A stretch of 64,000 nucleotides of DNA from Oculina patagonica (GCF_052425735.1 NC_135763.1:33666001-33730000), one strand, 5' to 3'; counted from the first letter of the stretch, positions 21,424 to 63,314 are shown. Numbers and translations: made by a program. Notes: generated from the sequence alone by a model not told the origin.

Positions 21424-23066
21424 TCACTTCCTACAATGCCCTTCCCTGCACGCTTGACACCGTTGGGAGTCATGTGGCCGACGCATTTTACCATGTCTTT
21501 TTTTGATGTCAGGTTCTTTGCTTGGAAAATTGTAGAACGCCTGTGAAACGGAAATGATACACGCATTTGTCAATTAAACGAGTACAAATACAACAAGATT
21601 GGAACTTCAGTGAAAAGTGTTACTGAATGGCCAGGAGTTGACTTGCTTGCCCTGAAGAAGTAAAATGGTACTTCTTTATCATTTTATATTTTTTTACCGA
21701 ACAGTCATGCGTAATATGGTGGAGGGAAACGATGAACAAGCTAATCAGTAAATGAAACTACTCGTTAAAATGATTAGGTAGCCGGTGGTAAGCGCGGGCA
21801 AACATGTAACTTGTTGGATGCAAGGGAAAATACTGAAAGCAAAAGATGACAAGTGCGGGAAATTATGCAACCAATAGCAACCGCGAGAAAGCGCGGTAAA
21901 ACACTCAACCGATAGCAAGCGCGGAAAACACGTTAACAGTGGCTAGCGCGGGAAACCGAGATGCCACTGGACCGGAAAGATCACATTGAGTAGTCATTGG
22001 AAAACAGCTCTCACTTTCATTATATCGCATACAACGTCGAAACCCTGGTTTGCGTGACCTGGGGAGGGAGTCAAACGTACCTCTCCTATCTTCTGATGAA
22101 CGTTCTTTAGCACTTTTTCAACCTCTTCACGATACCATCTCGGATCCAGGAAATCGTCATCGTCACATCTCCTGCACTGCTGACCGTACACCTTAAACCT
22201 TAAGGAATCTAAAGGAGAAGAAACGTTTTTCACCATTAAACCATTGATCATTCCTTCTTACGATATCTATAAATTGACACAAATTCTGAACAAACATTTA
22301 ATCAGCATGAAATAAAAACTTGTTCCAGGGGTGAATTGCTAGGAACCATGGGAACTACTTCCCTTTTCGCATTTCTTCGCTGGTGAAGTGACAGAAGTCC
22401 CGAAACGTCCGAGAAATTTTGTATTTCAGCGCATTAACAATATTTTTGTTTAATTTTTGTCATATCATACCTTTGCTACACAGTTTTCCTGATTTGTGTT
22501 TTTCAAATACTCCCTTTTTCGCAATTGACCGAGCCCGCAGTGTTTGTTACAGGTTGCTAAGAAACATTAAGTATTCCTTATAAGGACATGTTGACATGAC
22601 TCTTGTTGCGCGCCCAAGTGTCGTTGAACCAAAAAGACAAGTGCAATGTTGAAATAAAATAAACAGACGGGCTTAAAACTAAATCTTACAAAAAAATTCA
22701 CGTACAAAGATTTCTCGTTTCCTTTGTTGATGCGTTGCCAGAATCATTGCGGTCCTCTCCATCTTTTCCCTCGTTTTTCCCCTTTTTTCCATTCGCCTGT
22801 ACTTCTTTTCTTCTCTCACTCTCGTCGATTTTCTTGAACCAAAATATAACTCTGCCTGCCATTGAAGTCCAACTATTTCCACATTCACAGCCGAACTTCA
22901 CTTTGGCACCGTCTTTGAACTGTCGCCATTTCTTTGGCATGTTAGTTTTGGTTGGCTCCAGAGTCCACTCGTCCGGACTGAAGGCCTGGAACATTTCATC
23001 AAAGGTCGTGTGCCAGTGTTCTTTCAGGTTCAGATGCGGCGTGACGTCATCAAACCGAGAAGCCAT
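21424..23066 (-). CDS. zf-3CxxC / receptor-transporting protein (RTP)-like, 201 aa, no C-terminal TM helix
   Basis: Exons 23066-22706, 22208-22081, 21540-21424 (phases 1, 0; total 606 nt). Motifs W..F, KFGCECGNSWTS, FKVYGQQCRRC, PHDSQRCQACREGHC. Confidence 0.88.
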
Positions 23067-23837
23067 ATGTTGTTTAAGTTCGACTTTCTTTGAATAAGAG
23101 AAAATTTCGTGGAGGGAATAACAGAGAGATTGGCGGTTAATTTTAATGAGGCCATAGTATACACATAGATAGGAAGGCTCTCATTCCTGACTTGATTTAA
23201 ACAAAATGACATTTTTTCGGAATTATATAGAAATAAAACTGAGCTAAAACTGAAATCGGAAAGCGAAGGATAAAGTTAAAAATATTAATGACGGAGTCGG
23301 CATGAAGACCTTGGACTACAAAGGCACAGCGGGGTAAATAAATATTTTTTCGATAAGCTAAATAAAATAAGCCGTATAAAACCACTGAGAGTTTAAAAGT
23401 AAAGTTACTAACCTGATATTTAGAAAACCTTTTTACATAACAATGCATTAAAATGACTCCTGAGTTAAATAGCTTTAAATAGTTCAGCAAGCTTGATTGT
23501 CCCGGCAGGGTGTCCCGAACTTCACTACGACTTCGTCTCGAGCGTATCAGCAGAGAATTACAATTAGACGGAAGCTCGTTTCATTTTCAAGAAATTTTGT
23601 ACTGATACACGTTCGAAACCCATCTTAGAAGTCCACGCAGTTTGTAAGAGCAAGGGTGGCCACATAAATCAGTATTATAAAACTAATGTGAACGGCGTTT
23701 GCCACTCACAAAAAATTGGCCGCATAGAGGATGCTCATGAATTTCACACCTGTTCAGTCGCTCACGGAAGAAAGCCGGAAGTTGATTTGTAATTTCGGAT
23801 AGTAATTTTAAATGTAGTATCTGTACTATAGGCTTAA

Positions 23838-26207: not shown

Positions 26208-26270
26208 TTAATGTCTGCCTTCATTTTATTAACACAAATAAAAAAGAGCAATCATGTCCATGTGAAATCT

Positions 26271-30998: not shown

Positions 30999-31193
30999 AA
31001 ATGCATGGTCTAAACTTGTTCATTGACTAACAGATATAACAAATATCTGTTATGTAACAGATACATATATATATATATTTCTCTGAGGAAATACTTTCCC
31101 TGCCTTTACAATTTACTGAGTGTTGACTGATCGGTTTTTTTTTTCAGAGTCTAGAGGAAAGAGATCAGGAGCAGAAGAAAACACTCCCTGACC

Positions 31194-31648
31194 ATGGACC
31201 AAGTACTCACCGACACAGAACTGATTAGTTACATGAATAATTGGGAAAAAGAAGAAAAAAAGGCTTTGGTTCAAACAGCTGACCAGGTTGAAGAACGAGG
31301 TCAATGCGATTTGCAGCCAACCAGAGAACACAAGGTGAGCAAAGAAGCACTCATTATCATGCTAGGAATCAATGTTTCACGTTGTCATAGAAACAAGGAG
31401 TGTGTCTCACATTAACCCAAAACCGGGTATCCACTTATCGTCTTTACAATCCAATCGCAGTCTTCGAAATTCTGTCTGGAGCGTATCGTCCTGCTCGTGA
31501 TCATGACCAACATTCCACATTTCAGCTGGAACTCTAACATTGGCGTCGCGTTCAAACTCCAAGTTACGTTCGTGTTTCAAATCAGGCAACGAGCCAAGCG
31601 TCGAGACTGAGTAGTGATAACTACACTAACCTCTTTATCGACCTATCG

Positions 31649-31683
<35 letters not shown>

Positions 31684-33358
31684 TATCTCTTCTTTCCTCG
31701 TGGAGAATGGGGCCATTTGTCTTTATCCTCCAAGCTATCCTGTCTCTGACTACAACCTCTGCCTCCCCATATGTCCTAAATCCAAGTATTTCCTTTCTTT
31801 ATGTGTTGTTCTTCGCCACGTCTTTCTCGGCCGTCCTCTTCTACGCTTGCCATCGGTGTGCCATGTTAATGCAATCTTGGGATTTTTCTCTAATGACATT
31901 CTTGAATCATACGCCTTGATCTTACTTGCTCATCAATAGCCCTCTTCCCAGATCTTCTCTAATCTCTTCATTACTGACACCAATTAACGTCTAACAAACT
32001 TCTTACAAAGTCCGTAGTCCCTATCAACAACAAAGACGAAGTGTATTGTGCACAGAGGGTCACCTTTACGAGATAGTGCTTTCACGATACCTAGTGCTTT
32101 TGCGAACCGTTTAAGTTGCCTTTGCAGAGCATGAGCAAGCCATTGTCCACAAAGGTCCCCCAATTGACAAGCACCTAGGAGCAACACGCATTGAACCCAG
32201 AGAACCATAGCCTTACCCCTTAATCCCTACCGAAAGTGTGACAGAAAAACTAAACTGAACAATCAAACACAATTTTAACAGAGACAGTCTAACGAACCTT
32301 GATTTTACATTTTGCAGAGTATGTGTTCCACGTCAGCAGAACCGAACCAAAGCCTTCCGCCAGTGTATGCAGTTTTGGACGTTGAAACCACAGGGAAAGA
32401 CAGACAAAAAGGCCGCATCATTCAAATAGGCGTTGTTAAAGTTGAAAATAATGTTGTCACACCATGGATGGCGTATTGCAATCCTTGCAAACCAGTAGAG
32501 GAACAAATGAGCGCTTACAAAGTGCACAAGATATCACCGGAGTTTCTTCAAGGGAAGCCGACATTTGCCGACGTGGCACCGAAACTGTGCAAGTTTTTGG
32601 AAAACGTTGAGTATGTTGCTTGCTATAACTGTACGTTTGACTGGAGTTTATTGATGGCTGAGTTTGAGAGGCTGCAAGGTAATGAAGGCAACAAAGCACT
32701 CATGAGAAAGATAAAGTGGATTGACCTTTTTAGATTTGCGATCAAGTCGTTGCCCGATCTTGAAGATCATAAGTTGTCGACCTTACTAGATAAGTTCTCG
32801 ATACGAATCAAAAAGGGTCAAAGCCTTCTTCATCTTTATCAGTCTTATTTTACGACAGGGGATCAAGAAGACTTTCAAGTGCATTCGGTGTTCGAACAGG
32901 GAGAGAAAGTAAACTGGGACGAGGGACATCATGATGCTGTGTGTGATTCCCTTGCCGCGCATGCACTCCTGAAGAAACTGCTGGAGAAACACAGTTATTC
33001 CAACATCACCGATCTTGTCAATCACTTCCCGCAGTGTATAATTGACACAAAATTGTTTCTCGCTTTGGAAGTGAAATTGAAAGAGAAGAAAACTTCCAAC
33101 AAAGATCTGACGCCTTTTGCTGCACGAGCAGAGAAATTTTATTGTACGATGCCTTCACTAAGAGGGAGGACGCTCGAAGAACTGTCAGTGGAAACTATAG
33201 AAAAAGCACTGATGATTTGGGGGCAGGATGATGAGAGAGTTCGTCTTATATACAGAGCAGCCGTATTGAACAAGGTTAATAATTCACACAAACGTAGAGC
33301 CAATTCACTTTGCAGACTTTGCTCGAGTGTCAGTCCTAAAGAGCCAAAAACAAAATGA
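31194..33358 (+). CDS. DEDDh 3'-5' exonuclease, DnaQ/Pol III epsilon-like
   Basis: Coding exons 31194-31334 (47 codons, phase 0; in-frame TAG upstream) and 32318-33358. ExoI LDVETTG, RIIQIG, VHKIS..FL.GKPTF, ExoII YNCTFD, ExoIII HDAVCD. AATAAA at ~33463; probable 5'UTR exon ending at 29304 (AAG|GTACGT). Confidence 0.88.
31649..31980 (-). mobile_element. 3' fragment of an RTE-clade non-LTR retrotransposon with (ATG)n tail
   Basis: Minus strand reads PKIALTWHTDGKRRRGRPRKTWRRT, the typical C-terminus of RTE-like ORF2, followed by a microsatellite tail at 31649-31682. Confidence 0.75.
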
Positions 33359-35272
33359 GATCTTGCTTTTGGATACGACTATATCTTTCGAAAGTCAGAC
33401 ATTTCAGACATATTATGTCGTTCAATATATATTTTAGATGTATTATGGCATGGTAAAACCCAATAAAGGAGTACTGAAACGTGTTTTAATTACCTGAAAA
33501 ATATACATGTTTGTTTAATACACGATCAACTTAATGCAGGATAAACGTCAGTGAACTTTCATTTTAATTTTGGAACTTTTTAGTAGGGTTTCCTTTAAAA
33601 ATTGTTTCTCAAGTTCAGTTATGCCCTTGACAAATTTCTAGCTCCACAAAAAAATAAGCTGTGGACACCCATGTTTTGCAACTTAATCCGAGTCGTTCTT
33701 CGAAACTGGAAGCGGTTTAGCATTGTAACATGTTCTTCAATCCTCCTTCCGTTTCCCGTTCAGCGGTCCAGTCCAAAGTTCCAAACTGTCTCGTTTGTCA
33801 AAATGGATTTGTTAACTACCGATTTAAAACGAGAAATGGATAAATGTGATCCAAAACGCGAGTCTTGACCATGTTAATTATCGAAGATTAGGCTTAACTG
33901 AATCTTTTCTCTGTATCCTGTTTCAAGGAACTTGATTTTCTGGGAAACCGTCATGACCCGATTTGAGCTCAGCAATTTCCGTCAATAAAACAAAAGAAAG
34001 CTACAAAATATTGATACCGACGCTGTATTCCTAGGGCTTTTCCCTAGTTGAATTGAAGGGAAAAGTCCAGTAATATAGGGGCAGTTTGTATTTTATGAGA
34101 ACTTTTTCTTGGAATTTGACTTTCTAGGATTCTGATTTTCTTGGAAAACTTCACCAACGGTAAGCTATAAATTTACATCATAAGGATTGACATATATTTC
34201 AACTGGAGGAATCAATATTCAGTATTTTCTTTACCCAACGCATATGGTCAGTTATTCTGGGAATTCTGACAGTTCAAAGGTCATGTTCAAGGAAAAGCGT
34301 GACAATCTTTCTCCTAAGGAGGAGTGGGTAAGGCATGTGTCCTGGTACTTGCAATCTTAATTCGATAAAATATACTGTCAGAAATGGAAAAAGAGTTTAA
34401 AATAGTTTTTATTTTAATTTTTTTTGTCTTGTAATGACCGAATATAATTAACATAAATGTTTATGTTTGTTCAGCAGGTAGTATGCTGAATATACCACCC
34501 AGTTGATATAGGTATTTAAAACATCTCGAGGCTAATAACTTTGTTTGTTTTCCTTTTCAAATCTCGCGTGTGACTCGTGGGTATGAAGCGTGACGCGCGT
34601 GCTAGTCACCAGACTTCCCACGCAAGAAAAACTGGTACGAGCCACCTTAAAACTACCATACACAAAAAATTAATCGCAAATGGCAAAGGATATGACCGCG
34701 AAGTATTCAAAAATTCTGGACCAAGATAGATACCTTTAGATCCGAGTTACGGAGTACGGGCACGAGATTCGACCGAAAGTTTGTGGTAAAATGCTAAAAC
34801 AAGATTTATTCCACAAAGCTCTTGGCCTTTTTTGTGAGCAACATAACTGGCGTGGTTTAGTTGAATGGGCGGGATTTCTCTTGACCATAAAAGCATCAAG
34901 TTGTCAATCCAACTTGCGAGATGACTTTTCGGCGCCACTACTCTTTTTTCTACTCTTTTTTCTACTCAAAAGCTTGAAGTAAAATGAACACGGCTACAAC
35001 GTTTTACCTGCGTAAATGACACAGTTCACTGGCACACGCAGCGGCTTGGGTAAATCTCGTACTTGTGCTAGGATCTAAAAGGTCTCTATTATTTGACTCT
35101 ATGTCTACATCCGTGCCTTAATTAAATAACAATAAATCGCTCTGACAAAATCTAGGAACTCTAGCGATGATTTGAAACTGATCGGCTTAAAGCTATGCCA
35201 AACGATACCATCTCACATTCTTGGGTAACAATTTACAAAAGCTAAGGTTAGGAAATTTTTTAGACACCATTA

Positions 35273-45122: not shown

Positions 45123-45129
45123 GCAACAA

Positions 45130-46199: not shown

Positions 46200-46799
46200 A
46201 CTAAGGCTGCATATAACATCTGGCGGCTACAAAACCCCACAGCAAGACCAAACCTTGATGCAAATAAACTCGCTAATGTTCGTAGGGACATTATCAAGAG
46301 TAAAAGACACACTGAAATGGAACTTGAAACCATACGAGCAAACGTAAGGCAAGCCACCTCCACTCCAGAAGAAATGAACAGATCGAGACCTGGGATTGAA
46401 GACACTGACAAACAAGAAATGGTTGAAGCAAATGTGGACGAAAACACTTCCACATTACCTGAAAGTGCTGGAAGAACACAAAAACCTACAGAAACAAAGT
46501 CAGATGAGAGTTTGATAGCAATGAAAAATGATATAATGAGAAAGTGGGAAACAGTCAAATACCAGGAAATGACTGAGAGACCACTACTGCCAAAGATAAA
46601 GAAAGATCACCGTGCTCGTGATGCAATTGACACAGCCAACAAAGCCATTAAAGAAATCAAAGAAGGTACCGATGGACCACTCACTATAACTGACATAAAC
46701 CAAATTGTATACGCCACTGCCTCTATAATAACAGAGAAAATGGGCCTAAAACCAAGACAACACAGCCGCATAGGAAAAAAAACAAAAGAGCCTGCTTAA
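46200..46799 (+). mobile_element. N-terminal ORF fragment of a non-LTR retrotransposon (R4/Dong-like)
   Basis: Open frame ...NKLANVRRDII...ERPLLPKIK...ITDINQIVYATASII...KEPA resembles the region upstream of the RT in R4/Dong-type elements (from memory); it ends abruptly in (TAA)n and its 5' side is in the gap. Confidence 0.5.
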
Positions 46800-47382
46800 T
46801 AATAATAATAACTTAGGCTTTCGATGGAGTAGAGTCTTTCATCATAAGCAACGAGACTGTAACATGCATTCTCAATATATATAGAACTCATCAGAATCTG
46901 ACTCTTTAGTCTTAGGATTTGAACATGATGAACAACTCATCGAAACGTCCTTATTATCGCTGATTTTTATTCTTAACAATAATAATAATAATAATAATAA
47001 TAATATTAATGAAAAAACTTTTTTTAAAACCTCCGTAATAATTATCTGTGGAGCAAAACTATTTACAATAAATGGTTCTATGAAACAGACGTTAAAATGA
47101 AAAGCAAAATATGTTCTATAGAAAATGAATAAAATCTGAGAAGCGTTTAAAATTGGAAGGAGCGATTTAAAATGCAAAGGAAACATAATGGTTACATTGT
47201 GCGTTTGATGTGATCTGGCGTACGCGAGTAGCAATCAAAAACAAAGGAAAAACTATTTAAAATACACACTTTCTGCAATTTCATTGTCAATATCAGTGTT
47301 CTTAATATCTCTTTGAGGTCTTTTTCGTACTACTACTAATAATAATAATAATAATGATAATATAAAAAACTTTATTCAATAC

Positions 47383-47416
<34 letters not shown>

Positions 47417-49196
47417 CTGAAAAAGAGCAGACATTGTGAAAGGTGACAAATCCCTTAGTTTTTTTGTATGTGTTGCTACAGCCAGCAGCGAGGCAGCGAA
47501 CCATAATATTCTGGGCTTTAGATAATACTTTTGCACCGAAGATCTGGGTCATTGCAAAACCAACTTAGACAAATGCTACGTCATAGCCTCGATATCATTC
47601 CTAACCTTCAAGATGGCGGCCGTCGGTGTTCGAAAGCGGTAATTTTAAACGATTTCAAAGCCCACTTACTAAAAATCAAGGCGGCGCTTCACCAAACAAC
47701 AATTATTTTTGAAGTCCTGAACACATGGGCTTTCATTTAAGGTAAAATGTTTCTAGACCCTTGTTCATGTTTTCCTTTAACATTTGAGTCAAAAGCTTTA
47801 ACTTCATTACATTTGTAACAGCTTTGTTTCAAGGTCTTACACTGAATCCACCGTGCGCAAACGCTCAAGCTATGAAAAAGCTGATTGCAACTGAAATAAA
47901 CTGAGGGGTCCCGCAGAATTTGTGAGAAAAAATCGAAAATAATTATAGCAATTTGCGAGAGGAAACGAAAGCAGAATAATGAGAATTTGGCCTTTTGAAC
48001 CACAAAGTTCGGTATATTTATAATTCCTTTTTTTGTTGATGTAATTCGTTTTGAACTTAATGTTGAAATTTGTCGGCTTTTTTTTCTATTTTTCTCTAGG
48101 TGGGTTGCCCGAATTCTAAGCATTTTGCCCGAAAAATTTCGGCACTGAGGAGGGCTGCAGCCCCCCTCGCACCCCCGCCTCGTACGCCTATGATCTTAAT
48201 GCAAGTACAGCATCGCGATAGTATAGTTGTTGTTTGACTGGAAGCCAGCGTAAATATTTCAAGACTGGGGTCACGTAATAAAACTTCCTGGTATTAGAAT
48301 TTGTTTTCTCGTCGTTTCTTCTGCCGGCTAGACCTATAGATACCCTGCACGGCGAAACACACACTTTTTTCGCAACATCCGCTTTTTCTTGACTCCTAGT
48401 GGGCGCTAATAGACATTTCAGCGATGAGAAAGTTTCATTTTTCGAAAATACTTGGTTCAAAATTCATTTCCTTTGCTCTCATTCAAGCGCTTGAGATTAT
48501 TCTCGCTCATTCTGCAGATTCTGTCTATAGTGCGTTGACAGAACTGTCTAGTAGGCGCGCAGAGGGCTAGTCTCAACTAGTCCCAAACCTCTACCCGTCA
48601 AGCATCCAAGATGGTGACTCGAACACGATCGATTGTTATTATAATCGAGCGTTCGAACGCCAAAAACACCTGCACTGCAGGCTATCATTGGGAAAACTTC
48701 GGCGCTCTTTGCTCACGCAAACCTCGGACTGCTACTGGCGTGACTTGTATGATTCGCGTGACCTCTGGCTTTTCAAAGGTTTATCTATGCTGCGCCGTGC
48801 CTTTTATCGTTTTTATTCAAAAAACAAGTTATACTTTGTGGTCAACCCGCCAGGCCTAGTTCTACGCTCTGTGAGCTTCTTGTTTTTCAAATTCACACGC
48901 GCCTTTCGCGCGAAGCCAGACATTACATTAACATTCTGGTTTTGGATCGAGTCGCCGTTAACCGTTTGAATATTAAAATAGTCACTGAATTGAAAGAAAC
49001 GCTTGAACTGTTTTGACTGTAATGTGATGGATTTCGAAGATTTCTAATCGATTTAATGTGTTAAATTGTGGAAGGTATCAAATTGAATTAATGTGATCGA
49101 TTTGGCGAGTCTCTACTCGATTTACTTTGTGCTTGATTTGGAAGGTCTCTAACCGATTACTAATTGTGCTCGATTTGGAAAGTATCTAGATTTATG

Positions 49197-50904
49197 GGGT
49201 GTCTCGAAAACTCAGACCTCGAAAACCCAGACCTCAGACCCGAAAAACTCAGACCCTTGAAAAACTCAGACCCAAAAAAACTCAGACCCTCTGGGTGTCT
49301 CGAAAACTCAGACCCAAAAAAACTCAGACCCTCTGGGTGTCTCGAAAACTCAGACCCAAAAAAACTCAGACCCTCTGGGTGTCTCGAAAACTCAGACCCA
49401 AAAAAACTCAGACCCTCTGGGTGTCTCGAAAACTCAGACCCCATAAAATAAAACAACTACAGCTGACAACGTGATTATCGCAGATTGCTACAACCGACTT
49501 GTCTGACTTGTTTACTGTTTGTCGATACAATCTGCCTGAATCTGCCGAGAAAAGAAAAACAGCTCGCAGTGGTTGATACTCAACTTTCGTATTGATTCCT
49601 TGTTGCTTTATAAGTTTATTCCAAGTTTATCCACAATGTGATTGTGGTAGGCCATATCCAAGATATAGTATATGTTTATTATAGTTCTTGTTAAAGCTGA
49701 TGCCGAACACGCGATCCACGTGATAAATCTGTAAAAGGATTCAGATTGCTGTGATTTAGTTAAGCAGCTCTGGCTTTTACCAGTCATCGATTATATAACC
49801 AATTGTTTTTTTATTACATTCCAAAAGAAACAGATGCAATGTTATTTGTTCAGATTTGTCCCAATATGGGAGCTTAAAATTTATATTTCAGTAAAAAATA
49901 CAGTTTACGGAAAGTCAACTGCTCATTGTAAGGAAAAGAGATGAACTCGTGGTTTAAAAACTTTATCCGCGAAGAGATACTTGTTTCATCGCCCGGGGAG
50001 GGGGGGGGGAGACTCCCATATGAGAGTGACGGGGATGCTCGTCGTCTCGCTTAGGGGTATAAATTTTGGACTTTGGGTCTCGCTTAGGGTGTTCAAGGGA
50101 AAATGTAAGAAAATGACAATATTTTTAGCCGTCAGGGTCTCGTTTAGGGTTGCACACGAAGAAATATACAAATATAGTTCTTTTTCTCAGAATTTTGGTA
50201 TCTTTTAGGGGTCTAAAATAGCTTGAGCCACGCCCAGATTGGTCTCTTTTAGGGGTTCTTTTCAAAATTTCCGACGAGCATCCCCGTCCCTTAAATATGG
50301 GAGTCCCCCCACGGGTTTCATCATAATTGACCACATGATTAATAACTTATGCCATATCCAGGAAAAAAGAAAATTTTTTTTTATTAAAGTGACAATTATA
50401 CCGTTGAAATATAGGACGCTTAATGACCCCATAAGGTTATTTCTGGTCGCGAATATCAGTTTCTGTAACGTGACGCTATATGTTTGTCCTGTTGCGAAAT
50501 CGTCACACAACGTACCTTCGCGCTAATTTGACTTGTATCATTCTCCGCAATGTGGATAGATTTGGCTTGCACTTTAATGACCACTGCGAGCTGTTTTTCT
50601 TTTCTCGGCAGATTGTATCGACGAACAGTAAACAAGTCAGACAAGTCGGTTGTAGCAATCTGCGATAATCACGTTGTCAGCTGTAGTTGTTTTATTTTAT
50701 GGGGTCTGAGTTTTCGAGACACCCAGAGGGTCTGAGTTTTTTTGGGTCTGAGTTTTCGAGACACCCAGAGAGTCTGAGTTTTTTTGGGTCTGAGTTTTCG
50801 AGACATCCAGAGGGTCTGAGTTTTTTTGGGTCTGAGTTTTTCAAGGGTCTGAGTTTTTCGGGTCTGAGGTCTGGGTTTTCGAGGTCTGAGTTTTCGAGAC
50901 ACCC
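49197..50904. mobile_element. MULE-like foldback element; ~370-bp TIRs built of 39-bp tandem units; nested MITE at ~49991-50276
   Basis: 9-bp TSD AGATTTATG at 49188-49196 and 50905-50913; ends GGGTGTCTCG...CGAGACACCC; a short relative lies at ~51599-51831. Confidence 0.88.
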
Positions 50905-52177
50905 AGATTTATGCGATCGAGTAGAAAGTATCTGATCGGTTAATCCCGTTCATTACGGGAACGCTCGATTAAGAAAGATTTGGTGTTTGAATTGGAGCTA
51001 ATATAGCGCTCCGGCAAAATGCAATGTTGAGTTTGACAGCAACGCACCACACGTGTCGTGAGTTGTTATTAAAACTGAGATCGAATCAATCGCTACGTAC
51101 AGCTATCTTTACAGACTTGCTGACTATTGTGCTGGTTCAAATGTTGTCCTTAATTTCTTTTTTTAGGTTATGCGACCACAAGGCAAAACTCAAGAATGAA
51201 GGTCCAATAGTCTGTAACAGTTCGAAGGCTTTTCTACCTGTTTTATTATCGCATTTGACTGTATTCGATCCACAATTCCCTAACCCACAAAAATAGGAAG
51301 AGAGGCAAGAACACTTTAAAAGTGTGAGGTTATGGTCAATGTATCGAAAGTGCAAGTTAAGATTTCTTACCTTTAGGTTTCTGTCTCCATAGTTTCCGAT
51401 TTATATTTTTCCTGTATTTTGCTTAACCTCAGGATTGCAGTTTTCTCGATCGCGAAGCTGTAGTGTGACCGAGTGTCTTGTGAAGGTTCACGGGAAAGCA
51501 GTAGTATACTAAGCAAAAATAACACAAGGGTCAGGAGGGTAGAAACAATCGCTTTTCCTCTCCAACCAAACGACTAAATACAACGGCATATTCAGGGTGG
51601 GTGTCTCGAAAGTTCAGACCTCCAGCACCGAAAAGCTCATACCCGGTCGTCATGATATCGCATTGATAAAAACGTACACAAGGCAGCTTGCCGCAATCAC
51701 ACAATATCACTATCATTTAGGTATTTATAGATTGAGTTTTTTCGGGTATGACTTTCCCTGGGAGTTTCGAGACACCCAGAGGGTCCGGTTTTTTAGGTCT
51801 GTGGTCTCAGGTCTTGGTTTTCGAGACACCCCCAACATAAGCAACATGCTGGCAAGAACCAGTGCAACCAGGGGAAATAATCCATACCTCGTGAGGAATC
51901 TTTACGTATCGCCGGATGGCAAGCCGTTTAATACTGCTAAAAGCCTGTCGATTTGAAAATCCTGATTCAAGCGTCTTTCAGTATTATCGACTTGCAAAAT
52001 TTATACGATTAATTTCGAAAATGTAAGGTTGAATCAAGAAGTTGTATTACTCCATAGTCTACTTCTATTAATATTCAGCTTGGCTTGGAGTGCACAAACA
52101 AAGGAAGCTGAACAGCATGCATTTCTTTTGTTTCTGCCGTCAACTCACTGTCAATCGAACGGAGCCCATTGGAAGTA

Positions 52178-55148
52178 ACAAACTATCCTGTTACTAGCCT
52201 CGTTTTCATTCGTTTGTGCAGCCAAGCGTGTTTTCCAAGAAAGCTGCAAACAGTTTCCGGGTATTTGTTAAAGAGAAGGACAATTGTTTCAACTTTTATA
52301 ATTTAACTGAGTGAAATCGGAAAAGTATAATTGTCTCTTGGCCGAAGAGCATTGCTTTATGCAGTTGGTATTTTCTGGGTTGAGAAGAAGCGCAGGACGA
52401 TTTCGTTTCGGTCGAGCAAGATAAATATTTCATAAGGTTACTAGCTCCGCCGACTAACGAGGTAATTGCAAATGATAATCTTTTAATATAGTTGTCCCAG
52501 GTTGAATTACGGCGTACTCGTTTTTGCAGCCTTTCTCACTTGGTTCGTAACTTCGTAGCCGTTATTCGATGCGACTGAGAATTTCATATTTCTTAGAACT
52601 GGTCAAACTGGATGGTTTATAGGATGACTGATTGGTTTAAAAAAACTCCTACCGCTTTCGGTAACCAATCATGATCGGGTGATGTTTCTAAAGTGATTTT
52701 CCCAACTGCCGGCGGCTACTAGATTTTCGCGCTCTTTAAAAATAACATGTTTAATAATAATATAACACGTTTTCTTCGAGGGAAGCCGACTTTTGCCGAC
52801 GTAGCACCGAAACTGTGCAAGTTCTTGGAAAACGTCGAGTATGCTGCTTGCTATAACTGTACGTCTGACTGGAGTTTATTGATGGCTAAGTTTGATAGAC
52901 TGCAAGGTAATGAAGACAACAAAGCACTCATGAGAAAGATCAAGTGGATTGACCTTTTTAGATTTGCGATCAAGTCGTTGCCCGATCTTGAAGATCATAA
53001 GTTGTCGACCTTACTAGATAAGTTCTCGATACGAATCAAAAAGGGTCAAAGCCTTCTTCATCTTTATCAGTCTTATTTTACGACAGGGGATCAAGAAGAC
53101 TTTCAAGTGCATTCGGTGTTCGAACAGGGAGAGAAAGTAAACTGGGACGAGGGACACCATGATGCTGTGTGTGATTCCCTCGCAGCGCATGCGCTCCTGA
53201 AGAAACTGCTGGAGAAACACAGTTATTCCAACATCACCGATCTTGTCAATCACTTCCCGCAGTGTATAATTGACACAGAATTGTTTCTCGCTTTGGAAGT
53301 GAAATTGAAAGAGAAGAAAACTACCAACAAAGATCTGACGCCTTTTGCTGCACGAGCAGAGAAATTTTATTGTACGATGCCCTCACTAAGAGGGAGGGCG
53401 CTCGAAAAACTGTCAGTGGAAACTATAGAAAAAGCACTGATGATGTGGGGGCAGGATGATGAGAGAGTTCGTCTTATATACAGAGCAGCCGTATTGAACA
53501 AGGTTAATAATTCACACAAACGTAGAGCCAATTCACTTTGCAGACTTTGCCCGAGTGTCAGTCCTAAAGAGCCAAAAACAAAATGAGATCTTGCTTTTGG
53601 ATACGACTATATCTTTCGAAAGTCAGACATTTCAGACATATTATGTCGTTCAATATATATATTACATGTATTATGGCATGGTAAAACCCAATAAAGGAGT
53701 ACTGAAACGTGTTTTAATTACCTGAAAAATATACACGTTTGTTTAATACACGATCAACTTAATGCAGGATAAACGTCAGTGAACTTTCATTTTAATTTTG
53801 GAACTTTTTAGTAGGGTTTTCTTTAAAAATTGTTTCTCAAGTTCAGTTATGTCCGTGACAAATTTCTAGCTCCACAAAAAATAAGCTGTGGACACCCATG
53901 TTTTGCAACTTAATCCGAGTCGTCCTTCGAAACTGGAAACGCATTTTGTCTTTTAGCATTGTAACACTTTCTTCAATCCTCCTTCCGTTTCCCGTTCAGC
54001 GGTCCAGTCCAAAGTTCCAAACTGTCTCGTTTGTCAAAATGGATTAAGCGATTTGTTAACCACCGATTTAAAACGAGAAATGGATAAATGTGATTCAAAA
54101 CGCGAGTCTTGACCATGTTTATTATCGAAGATTAAGCTTAACTGAATCTTTTCTCTGTATCCTGTTTCAAGGAACTTGATTTTCTAGGAAACGGTCATGA
54201 CCCGATTTGAGCTCAGCAATTTCCGTCAATAAAACAAAAGAAAGCTACAAAATATTGATACCGACGCTGTATTCCTAGGGCTTTTCCCTAAACAAGTTGA
54301 ATTGAAGGGAAAAGTCCAGTAATATAGGGGCAGTTTGTATTTTATGAGAACTTTTTCTTGGAGTTTGACTTTCTAGGATTCTGATTTTCTTGGAAATCTT
54401 CACCAACGGTTAGCTATAAATTTACATCATAAGGAGTGACATATATTTCAACTGGAGGAATCAATTTTCAGTCTTTTCTTTACACAACGCATATGGTCAG
54501 TTATTCTGGGAATTCTGACAGTTCAAAGGTCATGTTCAAGGAAAATCGTGACAATCTTTCTTCTAAGGAGGGGTGGGTAAGGCATGTGTCCTGGTACTTC
54601 GATAAAGTATACTGTCAGAAATGGAAAAATAGTTTAAAATAGTTTTTATTTTAAACGAAAGAAATTGAATAAGAAGGCTTATTCATTTCTTTTGTTTATA
54701 TTTTCTTTAACTTGAAGCCTGTTTGAAATCACAAACTATCCTGTTACGTACTAGCCTCGTTTTTATTCATTTGTGCAGTCAAGTGTGACTTTCCAAGAAA
54801 GCTGCAAACAGTTTCCGGGTATATTTCTTTAAAGAGAAGAACAATTGTTTCGACTTTTATAATTTAAATAGCGAAATCGGAAGAAGCATAGATTCTTGGC
54901 CGAAGGGAATTGCTTTATCCTGTTGGGATTTTCTGGATTGAGAAGAAACATTGAACGATTTCGTTTGGACGAAGGACGGTCGAGCAAGATAAATATTTCA
55001 TAAGGTTACTATATCCGCGGACTAACAAGGTAATTGCAAATCTTTATAATTGCCCCAGTTTGAATAACAATGTATTCTTATTCGCAAGCTTTTTCTCTTC
55101 GGTCGTAGCTGGTATTTGATGCGACTCAGTATTTCATATTTCTCAGAA
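52178..55148 (+). repeat. Pair of diverged ~420-bp direct repeats (52178-~52598 and 54731-~55148) bracketing the truncated exonuclease copy
   Basis: Both begin ACAAACTATCCTGTTAC..CTAGCCTCGTTTT and share TTCCAAGAAAGCTGCAAACAGTTTCCGGGTAT and GGTCGAGCAAGATAAATATTTCATAAGGTTACTA. Confidence 0.8.
52771..53586 (+). pseudogene. 5'-truncated duplicate of the DEDDh exonuclease (lacks ExoI)
   Basis: Near-identical to 32543-33358; homology begins at FLRGKPTF; DVETTG is absent; CTFD is changed to CTSD. The duplicated block runs to 54654 (= 34417). An in-frame ATG at 52747 keeps a 279-aa frame open. Confidence 0.8.
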
Positions 55149-56857: not shown

Positions 56858-59800
56858 ATGTCAGGCGTAGTAGAAACACCTGTTGCAAAATATGGCCGAA
56901 GTAGCGAGTTTGGAGTCGTGTTGGATTTCATTCAAACAATGATAAGCAATGACACTCTACGACAAGAATTCAACATTCCGCATTTGGTCATGGTCGGTCG
57001 TCAAAACATGGCGAAGACAACGCTAATAAACCGACTGATTGGTCGATATCTTCTCCCAATGCGACGAAATGAAACTGCCAACACCCTTCAAGCACGCACT
57101 ACTTATCCCATAATACTCAATCTACGGAACGGCCCAAAGAGCATGGTGGAAGTGAAATGCGATAAAAGGCGGGATATAGGGGGAACTGTGGAAAATCCCA
57201 CGGATGAAGTAGTGGAGGATTTTCTCAACAAAGTTACTGGCCATCTTCCCAAGGAGGAGGGAACTCCGATATCAAAAACCCCTGTTAATGTTACTCTGCA
57301 AGGTGAGGTGTTATGTATAACGGCTAGGTGTTAAGATAAATTGCAAGATTTCTGTAGCATGAATTTGCTAGCACTACTACTCCACTGGATGGGATTCTAG
57401 TAGTCCATTGTAGGTTACCCTCTAACGTTTTTAAATGCCTTTAAGTTGCCCTAAGAAGTCTAAGGATTCGCCATTGCCCATTTATGCACCTGGGCGGAGA
57501 GAGGCACTGTGAAAGTAAAGTGTCTTGCTAAAAAAAAACACATACAAAACACATACAACATAGACAAAAACCTTGGCCAACGCTCCAACCCAGATCTGTG
57601 CCACCACACCTCAAAGTCACGGCGTTTTATGCCGCAAAATCGTGAACTGTAAATGCAAGAAACGTTATGAAACAAAAACCTCTCAAACCCCAGTTCCTAT
57701 TTTAAAGATCGAAGCACGACACAAGCTTCTAAACTCATTCAATAAGTCAAGTTTTAAGGTGGCTAAACACAAAGCTAAGGTACATGTTTCAGGGACATAC
57801 AGCAGGGATAAAGTCACTCGTGTACACACAAGAAAATGCAACAGGGACATGTTGCGGATGGTGCCAATGGGATGAGTCGCTGCAACACCTCCCTGCTACG
57901 TCCCTGCTACATTTTCTTGTGTACACGTTATTTTGTTATTTTCTTGTTGTACACGTTATTTTATCCCTGCTGCATGTTTCTTCGTGTGTCGGCGCTTTAA
58001 TGTTCAACAGGGAGCTTTGTTTCTCTTTTTCTCCAGGCCCCGAACTTACGACCCTCACCTTGGTCGACCTTCCCGGCGCTCACTTCGCCAATGACGACCA
58101 GCGAATGAACCACGTGACCCAAAGTTTGGTGCTGGAGTACATCGAGAAAAACACAAACAGCATCATCGTGATTGTGTCCGAGGTAGGGGACCCCACAGGT
58201 GACAGTGCAATTAACCTTGTCATGCAAAAGGCCAGAGATTTTAAGAGCCGTACTATTTGCGCGCTGACCAAACCAGACAAGTTGAGAGAAAGTGATGACA
58301 TGGGCTATAGAGTTGCAATGAATCAGTCCAGCTTTACTCTGGAGGATAACCGCTTTATTTTGCTTCGAGGTAAGACGTTTAGTTTAAATCCGTACTTGAA
58401 ACAAAGAATTTTCGATCAATACTTTGGGAAATCGCTTTGGATTGTTGTTGTCGTTCCTAACTAGCTAAGCAAATTGCTTGTGCAACTAATTAAAAGATCC
58501 CGAAAACGAACAAAATTGTGGTAGAAACATTACATTCCTAGCGAATAAACGGGCGAACATTTGTTGCGAATGCAAAATTTCAATTTTTGCAAAAAATTTA
58601 GACATAGTTGTTGCTTCTCGGAAGCAAAAAACGCGTCTGTGATAAATGTTGCGTGTTTAATTTGTGCATTTGCGCTTTTCCCATCTCGGGGGACGTAAAA
58701 ACCGAAGAAATCACAGTGAAAATCACAAACAAACCAATCAAAACTCGATGAAAATTCAGGAAAGGCATTGGAAGGAAAGCACGGGAAACAAGGCACCTTG
58801 GTAAACGATACTGCACTTGATTGGTGGAAAATTCGACTTCCTTGATTCCGACAAGCCCTCCGGCCGTCCCTTGTGAGAACATTGTAAGACGCAAGGGATG
58901 ATGGGAAGAATGATGCTGCCTTCCCATCATTCCCATCTGTTCNNNNNNNNNNNNNNNNNNNNNNNNNNNNNNNNNNNNNNNNNNNNNNNNNNNNNNNNNN
59001 NNNNNNNNNNNNNNNNNNNNNNNNNNNNNNNNNNNNNNNNNNNNNNNNNNNNNNNNNNNNNNNNNNNNNNNNNNNNNNNNNNNNNNNNNNNNNNNNNNNN
59101 NNNNNNNNNNNNNNNNNNNNNNNNNNNNNNNNNNNNNNNNNNNNNNNNNNNNNNNNNNNNNNNNNNNNNNNNNNNNNNNNNNNNNNNNNNNNNNNNNNNN
59201 NNNNNNNNNNNNNNNNNNNNNNNNNNNNNNNNNNNNNNNNNNNNNNNNNNNNNNNNNNNNNNNNNNNNNNNNNNNNNNNNNNNNNNNNNNNNNNNNNNNN
59301 NNNNNNNNNNNNNNNNNNNNNNNNNNNNNNNNNNNNNNNNNNNNNNNNNNNNNNNNNNNNNNNNNNNNNNNNNNNNNNNNNNNNNNNNNNNNNNNNNNNN
59401 NNNNNNNNNNNNNNNNNNNNNNNNNNNNNNNNNNNNNNNNNNCCTTGCGCAATATTCTTTTCGTGTCCCACAGATGGTAGGTGGGAAGGTTGGTAGGTGC
59501 GAAGGTACCTGGTAGGTAGGAAGGTAGGTAGGTAGGTAGGTAGGTAGGTAGGTAGGTACGTCGGGTGGGTAGGTAAGTAGGTCCTAAGTACAGTGTAAGG
59601 TCAGGTGGGAAGGTAGGTAGGTAGGTAGGTAGGTAAGTAGGTAGGTAGGTAGGTCCGGTGGGAAGGTAGGTATGTGGGTAGGTAGGTAGGTACGTCGGGT
59701 GGGTAGGTAAGTAGGTCCTAAGTACAGTGTAAGGTCAGGTGGGAAGGTAGGTAGGTAGGTAGGTAGGTAGGTAGGTAGGTCCGGTGGGAAGGTAGGTAGG

Positions 59801-61442
59801 TAGGTAGGTAGGTAGGTAAGTAAGTAGGTAGGTAGGTCAGGTGGGAAGGTAGGTACGTACCCGGATCTTTCGATTCGATGTCCAAAATGCGCCACTAAAA
59901 TACTTCGACAGCTTCTCTTGTGATTTCACAAGTTAGTACTGACAAAAATGAATGCTCTTTTATCCAATCGCTGCAGGTAGATGAAGAGCTAAAAGGACTT
60001 GAGGATAGCGAGGTACCAGAGTCGGATGAGGGAAAGGGGGCAGTGGCCATGAAACTTAAGCAATACCTCATCGGAGATCTGAAGGACCTTCTTTTTAACA
60101 ACACGTCGGATAACGAAGGAGGCGAAAAAGTGAGAGGGCTGTTTAATTCATTTTACGAGGATGTATTCAAGGTGAGAGAACGCGAAATAAGTGTTGTTAA
60201 ATGATGAAATTCTTCCATTTTAAGGCGTTGTTTTGAGTTTGCGCAAATTTTGAAACGTGTAGCTTTCGTATTCTGGTCTTTATTATCGACGAAAAAAGGC
60301 ACGATAAACGTGCACTGTCACGTTGAAGAACTGTTTGAACACAAAATCAAACTTTAAAACAAAAACTGCTCAAACTCGCACGTGCGATACCCTAGCGAAA
60401 ATATCACATGATTTAACAAATAGTCTACAAATCCGGATGTAACGAACCGAATGTAACGCAACCGGGTGTGACAAAATTTACAAAATCCCACTGTACACTT
60501 ATATTGAAACGACCAGCAAAGTGGAACTCACCCCGCTATACTAAAAGTGTTGCAATTGGGACACCCAAGGGAATAGTGCCAAGTGATAAATCCTCTTGGG
60601 CTTTAAATTCATTCAACTCTGTTCAATTTTCCGAGCCCCCTTCCGCCCCTCCCCCATCCCCCCCCCAAAAAAAACAATGTTAAAATATTGTCGCACAGTT
60701 GGATGGATAGAAATCAGCATTGTATTGCGAATGGGAAGGGGGAGGTTAATGCAATGCCATTTTTGTCGAATCGGTTAGGTGTCCCAAGCCTTTTGTCGAG
60801 GATTGTAGTTTAAATACCAGTACTATATTTATCTTTCTCTCTTTGTATTTGACAGTACATTTCAGGAGAGAGTTAGTATATCCCGCCAAAGAGTGCAATA
60901 CAAAGGCCCCAGCCAGGCCAGGGTGTTGGGTGGGATCGGACACCTCGATTTGCAACCTCGTTCCCAGGGTCTCTCTCTCCCCGCCCCTCTTCTCTCGCTC
61001 TGGGGGGCGGGGAGAGAGAGACCCTGGGAACGAGGTTGCTCGATTCGAGGTCTGATGCACTAACAATTAGGCACTGTGCCTTTCTAGAAGAAGTTGTTAT
61101 TATGATAGATAATGTCTGTCATGCCTAGGTGGATCCTCTAGCCATGCGTAATGACGATGATATCAGGAGGCGGCAGAAGAAGTTGGAGGGTGCGACTGCC
61201 CCGCTTGGAGAGAGCAGTGAGAACAGCCAGCTGCTGCAGAAACTGCTGTACGAGAAATACATAGGTACAAATCCTTTATAACTACTCTTCAGATTTCTCC
61301 AAAAGGAATGTTTGCATTTGAAACATGTAATGTGTATGTTGTAGTTCAATTTAAGTCTTGGTTATCTCGTTTTTTACTTTGTTTTATATTCGATTTATTA
61401 TCATAGAGATGGCAACCTCATCCCGCGCCTTGACTGTAATAA

Positions 61443-61497
<55 letters not shown>

Positions 61498-63314
61498 ACC
61501 ATACATCAGAACAAAGGAAATACCAAATGACATCAAGGGTAAAATCGAACCAAAACATGTATAGAAAAATTAAACAGGTCGCTAGCGTGTTTGGACTGGA
61601 GTGTTAGACGTAAGAGATTTTTTTTATCAAGACCTACTTTATAGTCTGTTAATTTCTTATCTTATAATGAATTCGGTCAATATTTTGTTAATCTTATATC
61701 CAACTCAGGCCGTTAGTGTTTTATTTTTTGACCGATATAATCTTGTCCATTATGTATATAGGTTATTCACCTGAAGGCCGTCAAGTTCCATTTCAGAGTC
61801 CAGTTGATCAGTTGCTACCCATTTCGGAGAACCTTGTGAAAACTGTCGAGACCACACTAAGGAAAATCGTTCAAAGGGCCATCACATGCAGCTTAGACAA
61901 GTTCCCCACCCTCAAACAAGCGGTCGAGGCGAAAGTCGTGAACAAAATTTTTGACACGAAACGCGACCAGACAACCCAGTTCATCAAACAGTTTCTTGAA
62001 ATGCAGAAGAAAAGTATCGACCAAGTGTTTGCACCAGTCCCCACGCCGGGCGAGATACACCTCTGGGAATCGTACCCAATGAAGGAAGGCAAATTTCATC
62101 CCTGCATGTCGTCAAAGACGATGAATCACATGAAAGACCTCGCAAAAAAGCTGTACCCTGATCAAATGGTAAAGGAGATTGAAGGTCGTGGCAATGTCCA
62201 TGGACAAACAGCGTTTTTAAACTACAAGGTAAGCATACAACACGGGTGCATATTGCACGCTTACGTACTTGCAGCTGTTTTGGATATAAGCCTCGAGCAT
62301 TCAACATGGCATGGAAATGTATATTTTATCTGAGACATGATGTTTTATTCTGTGCGATTGCTTCTTTACAGGAAAATACATTCGTCTAGCCACCTTGAAC
62401 GGAGAGGCAAGACCAATTGTTTTTGTGTGGAACATGATAATGTTTCTGTAGGTCCAGCGGCACAGACCCATCCAAAATTCTTGAAAATGTTAACCCTATC
62501 TATTGCGTGCAGTTACGTATTGGTTCTACATCGTCAAACGCCATTCTAATTTCTCACATTTTTTCTAGAGTTAAAGAACTGGTATGGTACTTTGTGTAGC
62601 CTGCGTAGCTGGCGGGAGTCGAGTGCGAGTGCTTTGCTTGCTTCGAGCGGGCGAAGCCCGCGTGCGTGAGCGGCGAAGGGGCGAAGCTGGCGGGAGTCGA
62701 GTGCGAGTGCACTCGAATCCCGCCAGGCTTGCTCCAAATTCCTCGCGGCTCCGCGGTTCCCTCTCTTTGCCGTTCGCCGGCCCGTCTCAAAGCAAGCACT
62801 CGCACTCGAATCCCGCCAGCTACGCAGGCTATACTTTGTGGTGTTGCTATGTTTTGGTTTCCCTGTGACTGGCTAGTGCATGCATTTTGCATCAGTTTCT
62901 TGAGCCAATCAGAATGTGCTGCAAATCAATAACCACAAAATAACCGGCTTTAGTTTGAAAGTCCCCTCTTACGAAATGTTTATTTTTCTTGGTATTTAGG
63001 AAAACGAGGAAATGAAGAATATAAAAAGGAATGTAGTGCGATGCTTCAACGTGCTGAAAATGAACGTCTGTGACACAGTCCCCCGTTGCATCCTGCATTT
63101 CTTCGTCACACAGTTGGTGGATGATCTTGGCCGCGCCTTGGAGAAGGAGGACTTGGTCGAGTACTTACAGGAGAGGAAGGACATCCGGGACAGGCGCAAC
63201 CTGTGTAGGAACCAGTCCCAGGCCCTGGAAAAAGCGCTTCCTTTCACCGCAGACGTGCTGGACAAACTGCTACGCATGAAACAGGGATCACCAGTAAAAG
63301 GCGGCAAGAAGTAG
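56858..63314 (+). CDS. Dynamin-superfamily (Mx-like) large GTPase, copy B; third coding exon presumably inside the N gap
   Basis: Exons 56858-57302, 58037-58369, [gap 58943-59442], 59977-60171, 61129-61264, 61762-62228, 63000-63314. Exon lengths and phases are the same as copy A; no stops or frameshifts. Confidence 0.88.
59476..59856. repeat. (GGTA)n compound microsatellite, expanded relative to copy A (38897-38915)
   Basis: Direct inspection. Confidence 0.9.
60953..61038. mobile_element. Short hairpin MITE, 9-bp TSD
   Basis: CAACCTCGTTCCCAGGGTCTCTCT ... AGAGAGACCCTGGGAACGAGGTTG; TSD CTCGATT(T/C)G; empty site in copy A at ~38216-38224. Confidence 0.85.
61443..61497. repeat. (ATTG)n microsatellite
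   Basis: Direct inspection. Confidence 0.9.
62597..62831. mobile_element. MITE, 9-bp TSD
   Basis: TIR TAGCCTGCGTAGCTGGCGGGA; TSD TACTTTGTG at 62588-62596 and 62832-62840; single copy of the site in paralog A at ~36766-36774. Confidence 0.88.

Follow-up and report, generated by a model that had tools for sequence, protein, structure and literature searches.

What kind of locus brings a zinc-ribbon gene, a DnaQ-type exonuclease, a HEPN domain and dynamin-like GTPases together in a stony coral? The question is raised by positions 21,424 to 63,314 of a 64,000-nucleotide stretch of Oculina patagonica DNA (GCF_052425735.1 NC_135763.1:33666001-33730000), referred to here as the window, which is G000:C6:33666001-33730000 of the 529-Mb assembly used for own-genome searches. 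A preliminary description had listed five defence genes and proposed a co-regulated antiviral cluster. The window holds four genes of this kind, intact where readable, and one truncated copy, and the RTP zinc finger, DnaQ-like exonuclease and HEPN families that had been named were each recovered by Pfam. The reading favoured here, at a probability of roughly 0.6, is that a robust-coral neighbourhood inherited by vertical descent underwent a recent duplication and inversion in Oculina, and that a HEPN-TRADD-N cassette captured one of its dynamin-like GTPases. This capture is the most telling feature of the locus, and an immune role of the GTPase family is plausible. The region as a whole is a partly conserved, lineage-specific coral neighbourhood, probably immune-related, rather than a demonstrated defence island.

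The HEPN gene and the first Mx-like GTPase had been described as separate genes. Splices in RNA contigs join them into a single minus-strand gene, fusion gene A, which occupies 44975-36297 and encodes 1221 amino acids (520 + 701) comprising HEPN, coiled coil, TRADD-N and a dynamin-like GTPase. The gene has 11 exons; the coding segments listed here are the HEPN exon, the TRADD-N exon, a mini-exon and seven GTPase exons:

44054-44975, minus strand: first coding exon of fusion gene A, with a DZIP3-type HEPN domain (motif RNSVYGH) and a coiled coil; HEPN_DZIP3 PF18738, 144 bits against a cut-off of 27.
43084-43632, minus strand: TRADD-N exon; TRADD-like_N PF20694, 36.8 bits against a cut-off of 23.7.
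42519-42592, minus strand: linker mini-exon of 74 nt between the TRADD-N exon and GTPase exon 1; RNA contig from run X2.
36297-42103, minus strand: dynamin-like GTPase module, 701 amino acids, modelled on paralogue C.
42103/42088-41644, 40061-39729, 39299-39085, 38748-38554, 38135-38000, 37604-37138 and 36611-36297, minus strand: the seven GTPase exons of the module.

The splice evidence consists of contigs from four RNA-like public runs belonging to three studies, in which introns are uncovered and the joints are canonical GT-AG. The joint between the HEPN and TRADD-N exons (44054|43632) and that between GTPase exons 1 and 2 (41643|40060) were found in all four runs, and spliced contigs match the HEPN and TRADD-N exons with 0-4 differences. 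The two joints that tie the cassette to the GTPase, 43084|42592 and 42519|42103, are both GT-AG and lie on one 387-nt contig from run X2, landing 15 nt before the GTPase ATG. The reading frame is kept through the mini-exon, and the combined frame of 1221 amino acids is open. In the GTPase A model every intron is GT-AG, there are no stops, and the seven exons are the same as those of copy C. Both features that define HEPN membership are present, a PF18738 score above the cut-off and an R-x4-6-H motif (RNSVYGH) in the translation; the RNase activity is putative.

The 74-nt mini-exon is unique among the loci compared. The acceptor 15 nt upstream of the GTPase ATG, on the other hand, is common to Oculina copies A to D, and a polypyrimidine tract with AG lies at or close to this site in both Desmophyllum copies. 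Because it is conserved in the four Oculina copies and echoed in Desmophyllum, the fusion acceptor is read as the acceptor of a 5'-untranslated region (UTR) intron that was captured by the upstream cassette. The two-exon HEPN-coiled coil-TRADD-N cassette is spliced, through the mini-exon, into a 5'-UTR intron acceptor shared by all four GTPase copies. In the fused protein, the dynamin module would assemble with itself through its stalk in a GTP-dependent manner, and the HEPN domains, thus brought into proximity, would begin to cleave RNA, with the TRADD-N domain acting as an adaptor. The architecture suggests an assembly-gated RNase as the design of the protein.

The cassette is reused modularly. 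At least 129 paralogous exons of the HEPN exon were found in the genome by own-genome search, and the nearest cassette paralogue (72% identity) repeats the pair of HEPN/coiled-coil and TRADD-N exons, with a polyubiquitin exon of six repeats behind it. This paralogue lies at L032 681-5170 (G000:C11:21782181-21786670), with an open reading frame (ORF) of 508 amino acids containing the six ubiquitin repeats, and such HEPN-TRADD-N genes are densely clustered on C11 at 21.6-22.4 Mb. Cnidarian TRADD-N proteins with an N-terminal HEPN, fused to AIG/GBP GTPases and polyubiquitin, have been described (Kaur, Iyer, Burroughs and Aravind 2021, eLife, PMC8195603), and shuffled cnidarian architectures are catalogued in the same paper, in whose main text the word "dynamin" is absent. 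Fusion gene A resembles these expansions in its N-terminal DZIP3-type HEPN followed by TRADD-N and in the variability of what comes C-terminally, but differs from the architectures of the main text in that the C-terminal position is taken by a complete dynamin-family GTPase, with G domain, stalk and GED.

Independent support for the fusion is provided by Desmophyllum pertusum, where a gene of 773 amino acids at the head of the homologous GTPase array is annotated with TRADD-like_N, Dynamin_N and Dynamin_M. At this locus (L030 1-8180, MU825398.1:1145066-1153245) a plain GTPase comes after the fusion gene and is in turn followed by an oppositely oriented WD40 gene, an arrangement also found where the Oculina array ends on its right.

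Own-genome searches recovered four copies of the GTPase, all in one cluster: A (minus) and B (plus) in the window, and C and D (both plus) within 29 kb to the right of it. Copy B is located as follows:

56858-63314, plus strand: GTPase B, without a HEPN/TRADD-N head; exon mapping on paralogues.

The copies are intact where readable. Pairwise ratios of non-synonymous to synonymous substitution rates (dN/dS) range from 0.10 to 0.26, with 0.10 for B against C, and dS rises from 0.095 between B and C to about 0.20 between A and either of these two, and to 0.32-0.37 between D and any other copy. The GTPases are under purifying selection. Positive selection was considered and rejected, since dN/dS in sliding windows between paralogues reached at most 0.82 and exceeded 1 in none. 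Full-length copy C (P0069) scores 52 bits for Dynamin_N, 82 for Dynamin_M and 35 for GED against Pfam cut-offs of 27, 28.5 and 21.4, and thus has the domain set of the classical dynamin superfamily. The G3 (DLPG) and G4 (TKPD) motifs are canonical. The G1 motif departs from the canonical P-loop GxxxxGK[ST]: it reads GRQNMAKT, with Ala for the second Gly, in 19 of 19 coral sequences that cover the P-loop, from six genera. In copy A it lies at window positions 41900-41960 on the minus strand, and the neighbouring stretch up to NETANTLQ is also nearly invariant in the coral homologues.

Sequence searches found the family in Acropora, Montipora, Porites, Desmophyllum, Pocillopora, Stylophora and Orbicella, and its G domain is extremely conserved across stony corals. 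Outside stony corals there is one weak sea-anemone match, after which come dynamins of fungi and algae with 21-27% identity. Tandem arrays also occur in Porites lutea (at least four copies) and Pocillopora meandrina (three). In a maximum-likelihood tree the paralogues group by species, with robust corals apart from complex corals; the clustering by species fits repeated local duplication or gene conversion. A short repeat unit at window positions 38895-38936, within the intron that follows GTPase exon 3 of copy A, is expanded in the same intron to about 5 kb of micro- or minisatellite in copy D (ext 83690-88512) and to about 0.3 kb in copy C.

The window was said to contain two Mx-like GTPases. 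Their dynamin-like nature holds, whereas the specific kinship to Mx does not, and neither does the count, given an array of four with two members beyond the window. A phmmer search against the PDB gave a Dnm1-type dynamin (6fgz) at 2e-15, Mx1 and dynamin 3 at about 1e-12 each, and DRP1 at 4e-12. The AlphaFold2 model of the GTPase (predicted local distance difference test score, pLDDT, of 76) reached a best template modelling (TM) score, normalised by target, of 0.79 with MxA (range 0.74-0.79) and 0.76 with DRP1, and Foldseek E-values of 1e-17 to 1e-21 were alike for dynamin, DRP1, MxA and MxB. The coral GTPases are thus no closer to Mx than to dynamin, DRP1 or Vps1, and "Mx-like" describes their architecture only. 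With vertebrate Mx proteins (MxA/Mx1 and MxB/Mx2) they share a G domain, bundle signalling element, stalk and GED with no pleckstrin homology or proline-rich domain, and some family members are named "Mx1-like" by NCBI. They differ in resembling dynamin 1/3, DRP1 and Vps1 equally or better and in the P-loop GRQNMAKT; moreover, interferon induction does not apply to the coral GTPases, whose antiviral activity is putative. The stalk exon gave 17 matches among 1.84 billion representative proteins, nearly all exon-sized fragments and none full-length, and for this reason could not place the family by itself. Single GTPase exons matched the PDB at E 1e-3 or worse, with no discrimination between subfamilies, and PADLOC models, including that for dynamin, had no matches to the GTPase, the HEPN exon or exon 2 of the 3CxxC gene described below.

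An immune or conflict role of the GTPase family is inferred from its capture by a cassette typical of invertebrate immune expansions, from the Desmophyllum TRADD-N-dynamin gene and from the species-specific tandem arrays. Several observations weigh against this interpretation and against the fusion on which it draws. The junction between TRADD-N and GTPase is carried by a single contig of low depth (6.5) from one run. An unfused GTPase-only isoform of copy A is plausible because GTPase exon 1 has retained an ATG of its own, and the GTPase contigs placed on copy A are probably mostly derived from paralogues, because they differ from it by about 5%. Among the matches to P0073 in a sequence search of other corals, which admitted proteins of up to about 1235 amino acids, no protein bore a HEPN or TRADD-N Pfam domain; the Desmophyllum fusion surfaced through gene context alone. 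The fused GTPases of Oculina and Desmophyllum do not cluster together in the tree, which may mean that the fusions arose independently or that gene conversion has blurred the tree. Because the P-loop departs from the canonical motif, GTP hydrolysis by the coral proteins is an assumption. Finally, the immune role is assigned through guilt by domain association alone.

The same data bear on a more prosaic explanation, in which the locus is an ordinary neighbourhood of unrelated, non-immune genes. The GTPases would then remodel membranes or organelles, the exonuclease would act in DNA or RNA metabolism, the 3CxxC protein would escort the neighbouring G protein-coupled receptor (GPCR) to the membrane, and the fusion would be a recent rearrangement by-product of little function. 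Purifying selection, the extreme conservation of the G domain and a predicted fold that fits DRP1 or dynamin as well as Mx agree with this explanation. However, tandem arrays of at least three copies in Oculina, Porites and Pocillopora, with species-wise clustering, are unusual for housekeeping dynamins, the fused module is intact and constrained (dN/dS 0.14 against copies B and C), and a TRADD-N-dynamin gene is annotated in Desmophyllum too. Taken with the evidence from the neighbouring genes given below, we consider an ordinary neighbourhood unlikely.

The gene to the left of fusion gene A encodes the exonuclease, of which a second copy lies to its right:

31176-31352, plus strand: conserved block about 1 kb upstream of the exonuclease ORF; blastn, at the same relative position in the coral loci L021, L022 and L026.
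32321-33358, plus strand: exonuclease 1, an uninterrupted coding sequence (CDS) of 345 amino acids; RNase_T/DEDDh 67 bits, PADLOC DEDDh 110 bits.
52747-53586, plus strand: exonuclease 2, a 5'-truncated duplicate with an open frame of 279 amino acids; homology starts at 52771, equivalent to residue 78 of copy 1.

The motifs of exonuclease 1 are intact (ExoI LDVETTG, ExoII NCTFDW, ExoIII HHDAVCD) and their positions are conserved in the family alignment. Copy 1 has all the hallmarks of a DEDDh nuclease, namely D-x-E in ExoI, D in ExoII, H-x4-D in ExoIII and an RNase H-like fold; copy 2 does not. TREX1 and ISG20 had been named as members of the DEDDh group; the closest structural matches of the coral enzyme are bacterial. 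With an AlphaFold2 model of pLDDT 82, the best Foldseek match is Escherichia coli DNA polymerase III (Pol III) epsilon (TM score by target 0.86), and further best matches are PolC, the exonuclease domains of DinG and ExoX, and the Streptococcus thermophilus DnaQ domain. In the list of 50 matches, about 16 bacterial DnaQ/PolC/DinG/ExoX entries (E about 1e-9) stand above TREX1 and TREX2 (E about 1e-6), ERI1 is also weaker, and ISG20 has no entry. As judged from the predicted structure, exonuclease 1 is of the bacterial DnaQ type and not of the TREX1/ISG20 type. All NCBIfam dnaQ models score it below their own cut-offs.

With the bacterial DnaQ/Pol III epsilon-type DEDDh nucleases, including the Cas-associated DEDDh domain, the coral enzyme shares the three Exo motifs, the fold and the PADLOC DEDDh match. 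It differs from them in being low-copy and syntenic, in the conserved block that precedes it, in some 40 disordered residues (166-202) inserted between ExoII and ExoIII, and in a helical domain that takes up about 130 residues at the C-terminal end (about 205-333, window 32933-33319). This domain is conserved and confidently modelled, and it had no structural match in the PDB or AlphaFold clusters. The upstream block at 31176-31352 probably serves exonuclease 1 as its promoter or as a 5' exon without coding sequence. Words of the exonuclease 1 CDS are present at 0.58-0.69 in 13 RNA-like runs, which suggests broad expression. Three copies exist in the genome, the third on another chromosome with no GTPase within 20 kb. 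Close homologues have 49-77% identity, and several of the assemblies that supply them share the gene order of the window and carry coral-type GTPases. That the exonuclease might be transposon cargo was ruled out by its mere three genome copies and by synteny across corals.

Further to the left lie the RTP-like gene and its neighbour, preceded by a second receptor gene outside the cluster:

21424-23066, minus strand: 3CxxC zinc-ribbon gene, about 195 amino acids; exons at about 23066-22706, 22208-22081 and 21540-21424.
19437-20429, plus strand: rhodopsin-type GPCR, directly left of the 3CxxC gene and in the same conserved block; 7tm_1 166 bits.
8651-9604, plus strand: second rhodopsin-type GPCR, left of the cluster.

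The 3CxxC domain (PF13695) is matched by exon 1 with 19 bits (profile positions 3-32, below the cut-off alone) and by exon 2 with 27 bits (profile positions 31-70, above the cut-off), and exon 3 contributes a third CxxC motif, QRCQACREGHC, so that the gene has the zinc ribbon of the RTP family. The first motif is CxC in Oculina, L025 and L026, and CxxC in L023 alone. The model, in which the junction of exons 2 and 3 is approximate, ends at a stop at 21424 right after the last zinc motif, with no hydrophobic tail and hence no C-terminal transmembrane anchor. The genome has one copy of this gene, which is conserved in L023, L025 and L026. Mammalian RTP1 and RTP2 escort odorant receptors to the membrane, RTP4 is antiviral, and RTP1-4 carry a C-terminal membrane anchor. 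The coral protein is like RTP1-4 in its PF13695 domain, including the final C-x2-C-x3-H-C motif, but it is small, single copy and anchorless, with CxC as its first motif.

The 3CxxC gene and the GPCR at 19437-20429 are arranged tail-to-tail, and L025 and L026 preserve this pairing. With such a conserved neighbour, a chaperone role like that of RTP1/2 is as fitting as an antiviral one like that of RTP4, and because the pairing is kept, the 3CxxC protein might serve the GPCR, as RTP1/2 do, rather than defence. The adjacency of the two genes in three loci, the single copy of the 3CxxC gene and the seemingly broad expression of the exonuclease are what an ordinary neighbourhood would lead one to expect, whereas the missing membrane anchor does not agree with a receptor escort of the RTP1-4 kind.

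The vertical inheritance of the neighbourhood is seen from its gene order in other corals:

Locus L026: GPCR, 3CxxC gene (minus strand), exonuclease, exonuclease, GTPase.
Locus L021: exonuclease, exonuclease, GTPase.
Locus L022: exonuclease, GTPase.
Locus L025: GPCR, 3CxxC gene, exonuclease; no GTPase within 10 kb.
Loci L023/L028: 3CxxC gene, exonuclease, exonuclease; no GTPase within 13 kb.
Porites lutea: array of GTPases alone; exonuclease, 3CxxC gene and GPCR all absent from the 10 kb upstream.

L021, L022 and L026 are distinct robust-coral assemblies that differ from each other by 15-20% at the DNA level and are closest to Oculina, Orbicella and Desmophyllum/Oculina, respectively. L025 and L023/L028 represent two more distant assemblies, with exonucleases 49% identical to the Oculina copy. 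The preliminary description had named the lack of conserved linkage in relatives as evidence that would speak against it; the exonuclease and GTPase genes are in fact adjacent in the first three assemblies, but they are not adjacent in Porites lutea, L023/L028 or L025. The 3CxxC gene and the exonuclease adjoin each other in L023, L025 and L026. We infer that these two genes are neighbours by descent, and a functional tie of either to the GTPases is possible. The order inherited within robust stony corals would be a GPCR, the 3CxxC zinc-ribbon gene, one or two DnaQ-type exonuclease genes and tandem divergent dynamin-family GTPases. Segmental duplication and inversion in the lineage of Oculina patagonica would then have produced four GTPase paralogues, a truncated second exonuclease and one chimeric gene. 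Since L021 and L026 have nothing between their two exonuclease genes, the inverted fusion gene is read as a lineage-specific insertion.

The rearrangement that had been proposed for the region is borne out by self-comparison, in which the segments 32543-34417 and 52771-54654 are 95.5% identical. The exonuclease-GTPase neighbourhood does occur twice, as had been stated, but the second pair stems from a recent segmental duplication and its exonuclease is truncated: the duplication breakpoint (32543/52771) falls inside the ORF, and exonuclease 2 therefore lacks the Asp/Glu motif of ExoI. The two exonucleases have a dN/dS of 0.28, from 11 synonymous and 12 non-synonymous changes; with an open frame and only 23 changes, decay of exonuclease 2 is not yet visible.

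Between the two halves of the region lie a repeat-rich spacer and, at its left edge and within GTPase B, two assembly gaps:

46200-52700, no strand: repeat-rich spacer; own-genome DNA search, 3418 first-look candidates, copies 96-99% identical.
46200-46797: low-copy element.
47777-48200: element of about 420 bp.
49992-50316: young high-copy element of about 320 bp.
About 49160-49573 and about 50580-50950: inverted minisatellite blocks; self-comparison.
46071-46199, no strand: assembly gap (run of N), intergenic and outside all gene models.
58943-59442, no strand: assembly gap at the expected site of GTPase B exon 3, as judged from paralogues C and D.

The element at 49992-50316 has dozens of scored copies of 96-99% identity on many chromosomes and looks like a young family of the short interspersed element type or the miniature inverted-repeat transposable element type. 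The inverted blocks are 95-98% identical to each other and contain open frames in several phases (SEFSRHPEGLSFFG-type units). No protein domain of a transposable element was found in ten intergenic ORFs, and the repeats there are short non-coding elements. The region had been called dense in transposable elements, which is true of 46.2-52.7 kb and not of the remainder.

Gaps and repeats raise the question of whether the inverted GTPase copy and the duplicated exonuclease could be assembly artefacts, that is, repeats mis-joined or collapsed near the two gaps. Apart from the gaps themselves and the repeat-rich spacer, the exon missing from GTPase B at the second gap would be in line with this. 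Against it, exonuclease 1 and the inverted fusion gene are on one uninterrupted piece left of the first gap, and the inverted orientation of GTPase A relative to exonuclease 1 is for that reason independent of this gap. A divergence of 5-15% and distinct introns show that the copies are not collapsed duplicates, and the HEPN and TRADD-N exons are matched by spliced RNA contigs, as described above. Exon 3 of GTPase B is absent from the read sequence, but the other exons are collinear and in frame on both sides of the second gap, within which exon 3 presumably lies. In the RefSeq model of GTPase B (P0077, 644 amino acids) the missing exon is replaced by a 5'-extended version of the next exon (59933-60171), and this extension is probably an annotation artefact caused by the gap. 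An artefactual origin of the arrangement is accordingly considered very improbable.

This leaves the proposal of a co-regulated antiviral island, according to which the 3CxxC protein, the exonuclease and the HEPN-armed and plain GTPases act together and selection has for this reason kept them linked; a GTPase could, for example, trap viral nucleoprotein while the exonuclease or HEPN degrades nucleic acid. Several findings point this way. The exonuclease and GTPase genes are adjacent in at least four distinct robust-coral genomes, the adjacency of 3CxxC gene and exonuclease reaches more distant assemblies, the HEPN-TRADD-N head on one GTPase points to immunity, the exonuclease matches the DEDDh model of a phage-defence library, and some RNA-like runs, X2 and X8 among them, contain both exonuclease and fusion-gene transcripts. 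On the other side, the exonuclease block is separate from the GTPase array in Porites lutea, L023/L028 and L025, the third exonuclease paralogue and GTPase copies C and D have no such partner near them, and exonuclease 2 is truncated. Whether every gene is linked to defence, as had been claimed, depends on where the borders are drawn, for the same conserved block opens with the rhodopsin-type GPCR at 19437-20429.

Nor does the regulatory evidence favour co-regulation. The genes of the cluster are 3-10 kb apart in mixed orientations. Half-site pairs resembling the interferon-stimulated response element (ISRE), GAAANNGAAA, occur 21 times against 9.2 expected, scattered over the whole window. Motif scans of the window found no shared promoter motif; the ISRE-like sites are not promoter-proximal and NF-kB-like sites are not enriched. 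The presence of exonuclease words in most RNA-like runs suggests basal rather than induced expression, and a search for literature on the induction of coral Mx, RTP or ISG20 yielded nothing usable. Conserved gene order alone, moreover, is no proof of selection for linkage.

What defines bacterial defence islands is that genes co-localise statistically in thousands of genomes and are often exchanged horizontally. Like them, and like clustered immune genes of animals, the coral locus assembles genes with nucleic-acid and immune-type domains in a repeat-rich, rearranging region where linkage is partly kept. Unlike the bacterial islands, its linkage is vertically inherited, is seen in a small number of genomes, extends to a GPCR and is interrupted in Porites. 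The island in the strict sense thus seems distinctly unlikely, and co-regulation with functional coupling is a minority possibility. A bolder version would make the DEDDh exonuclease and the divergent dynamin-like GTPase a selected two-gene nucleic-acid defence module of robust corals, which together with the 3CxxC RNA-binding protein would be the animal counterpart of a defence island; the HEPN-TRADD-N GTPase would be a recently evolved form complete in itself, with an RNase gated by GTPase assembly on a viral target. We regard this as improbable and offer it as speculation.

An animal defence island would be notable if true, and the present evidence supports a partly conserved neighbourhood and no more. 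The interest of the preferred reading, a vertically inherited neighbourhood in which a GTPase was captured by an immune-type cassette, lies in the GTPases themselves. Corals, to our knowledge, lack interferon, and we know of little work on how they resist viruses. With its species-specific tandem arrays and its capture by a HEPN-TRADD-N cassette, this stony-coral dynamin family provides a concrete candidate for an antiviral GTPase beyond the vertebrates. The way in which such chimeras can originate is illustrated here too, an upstream cassette being spliced into a shared 5'-UTR intron acceptor, and the fused protein offers a testable design, an RNase that would be gated by GTPase assembly.

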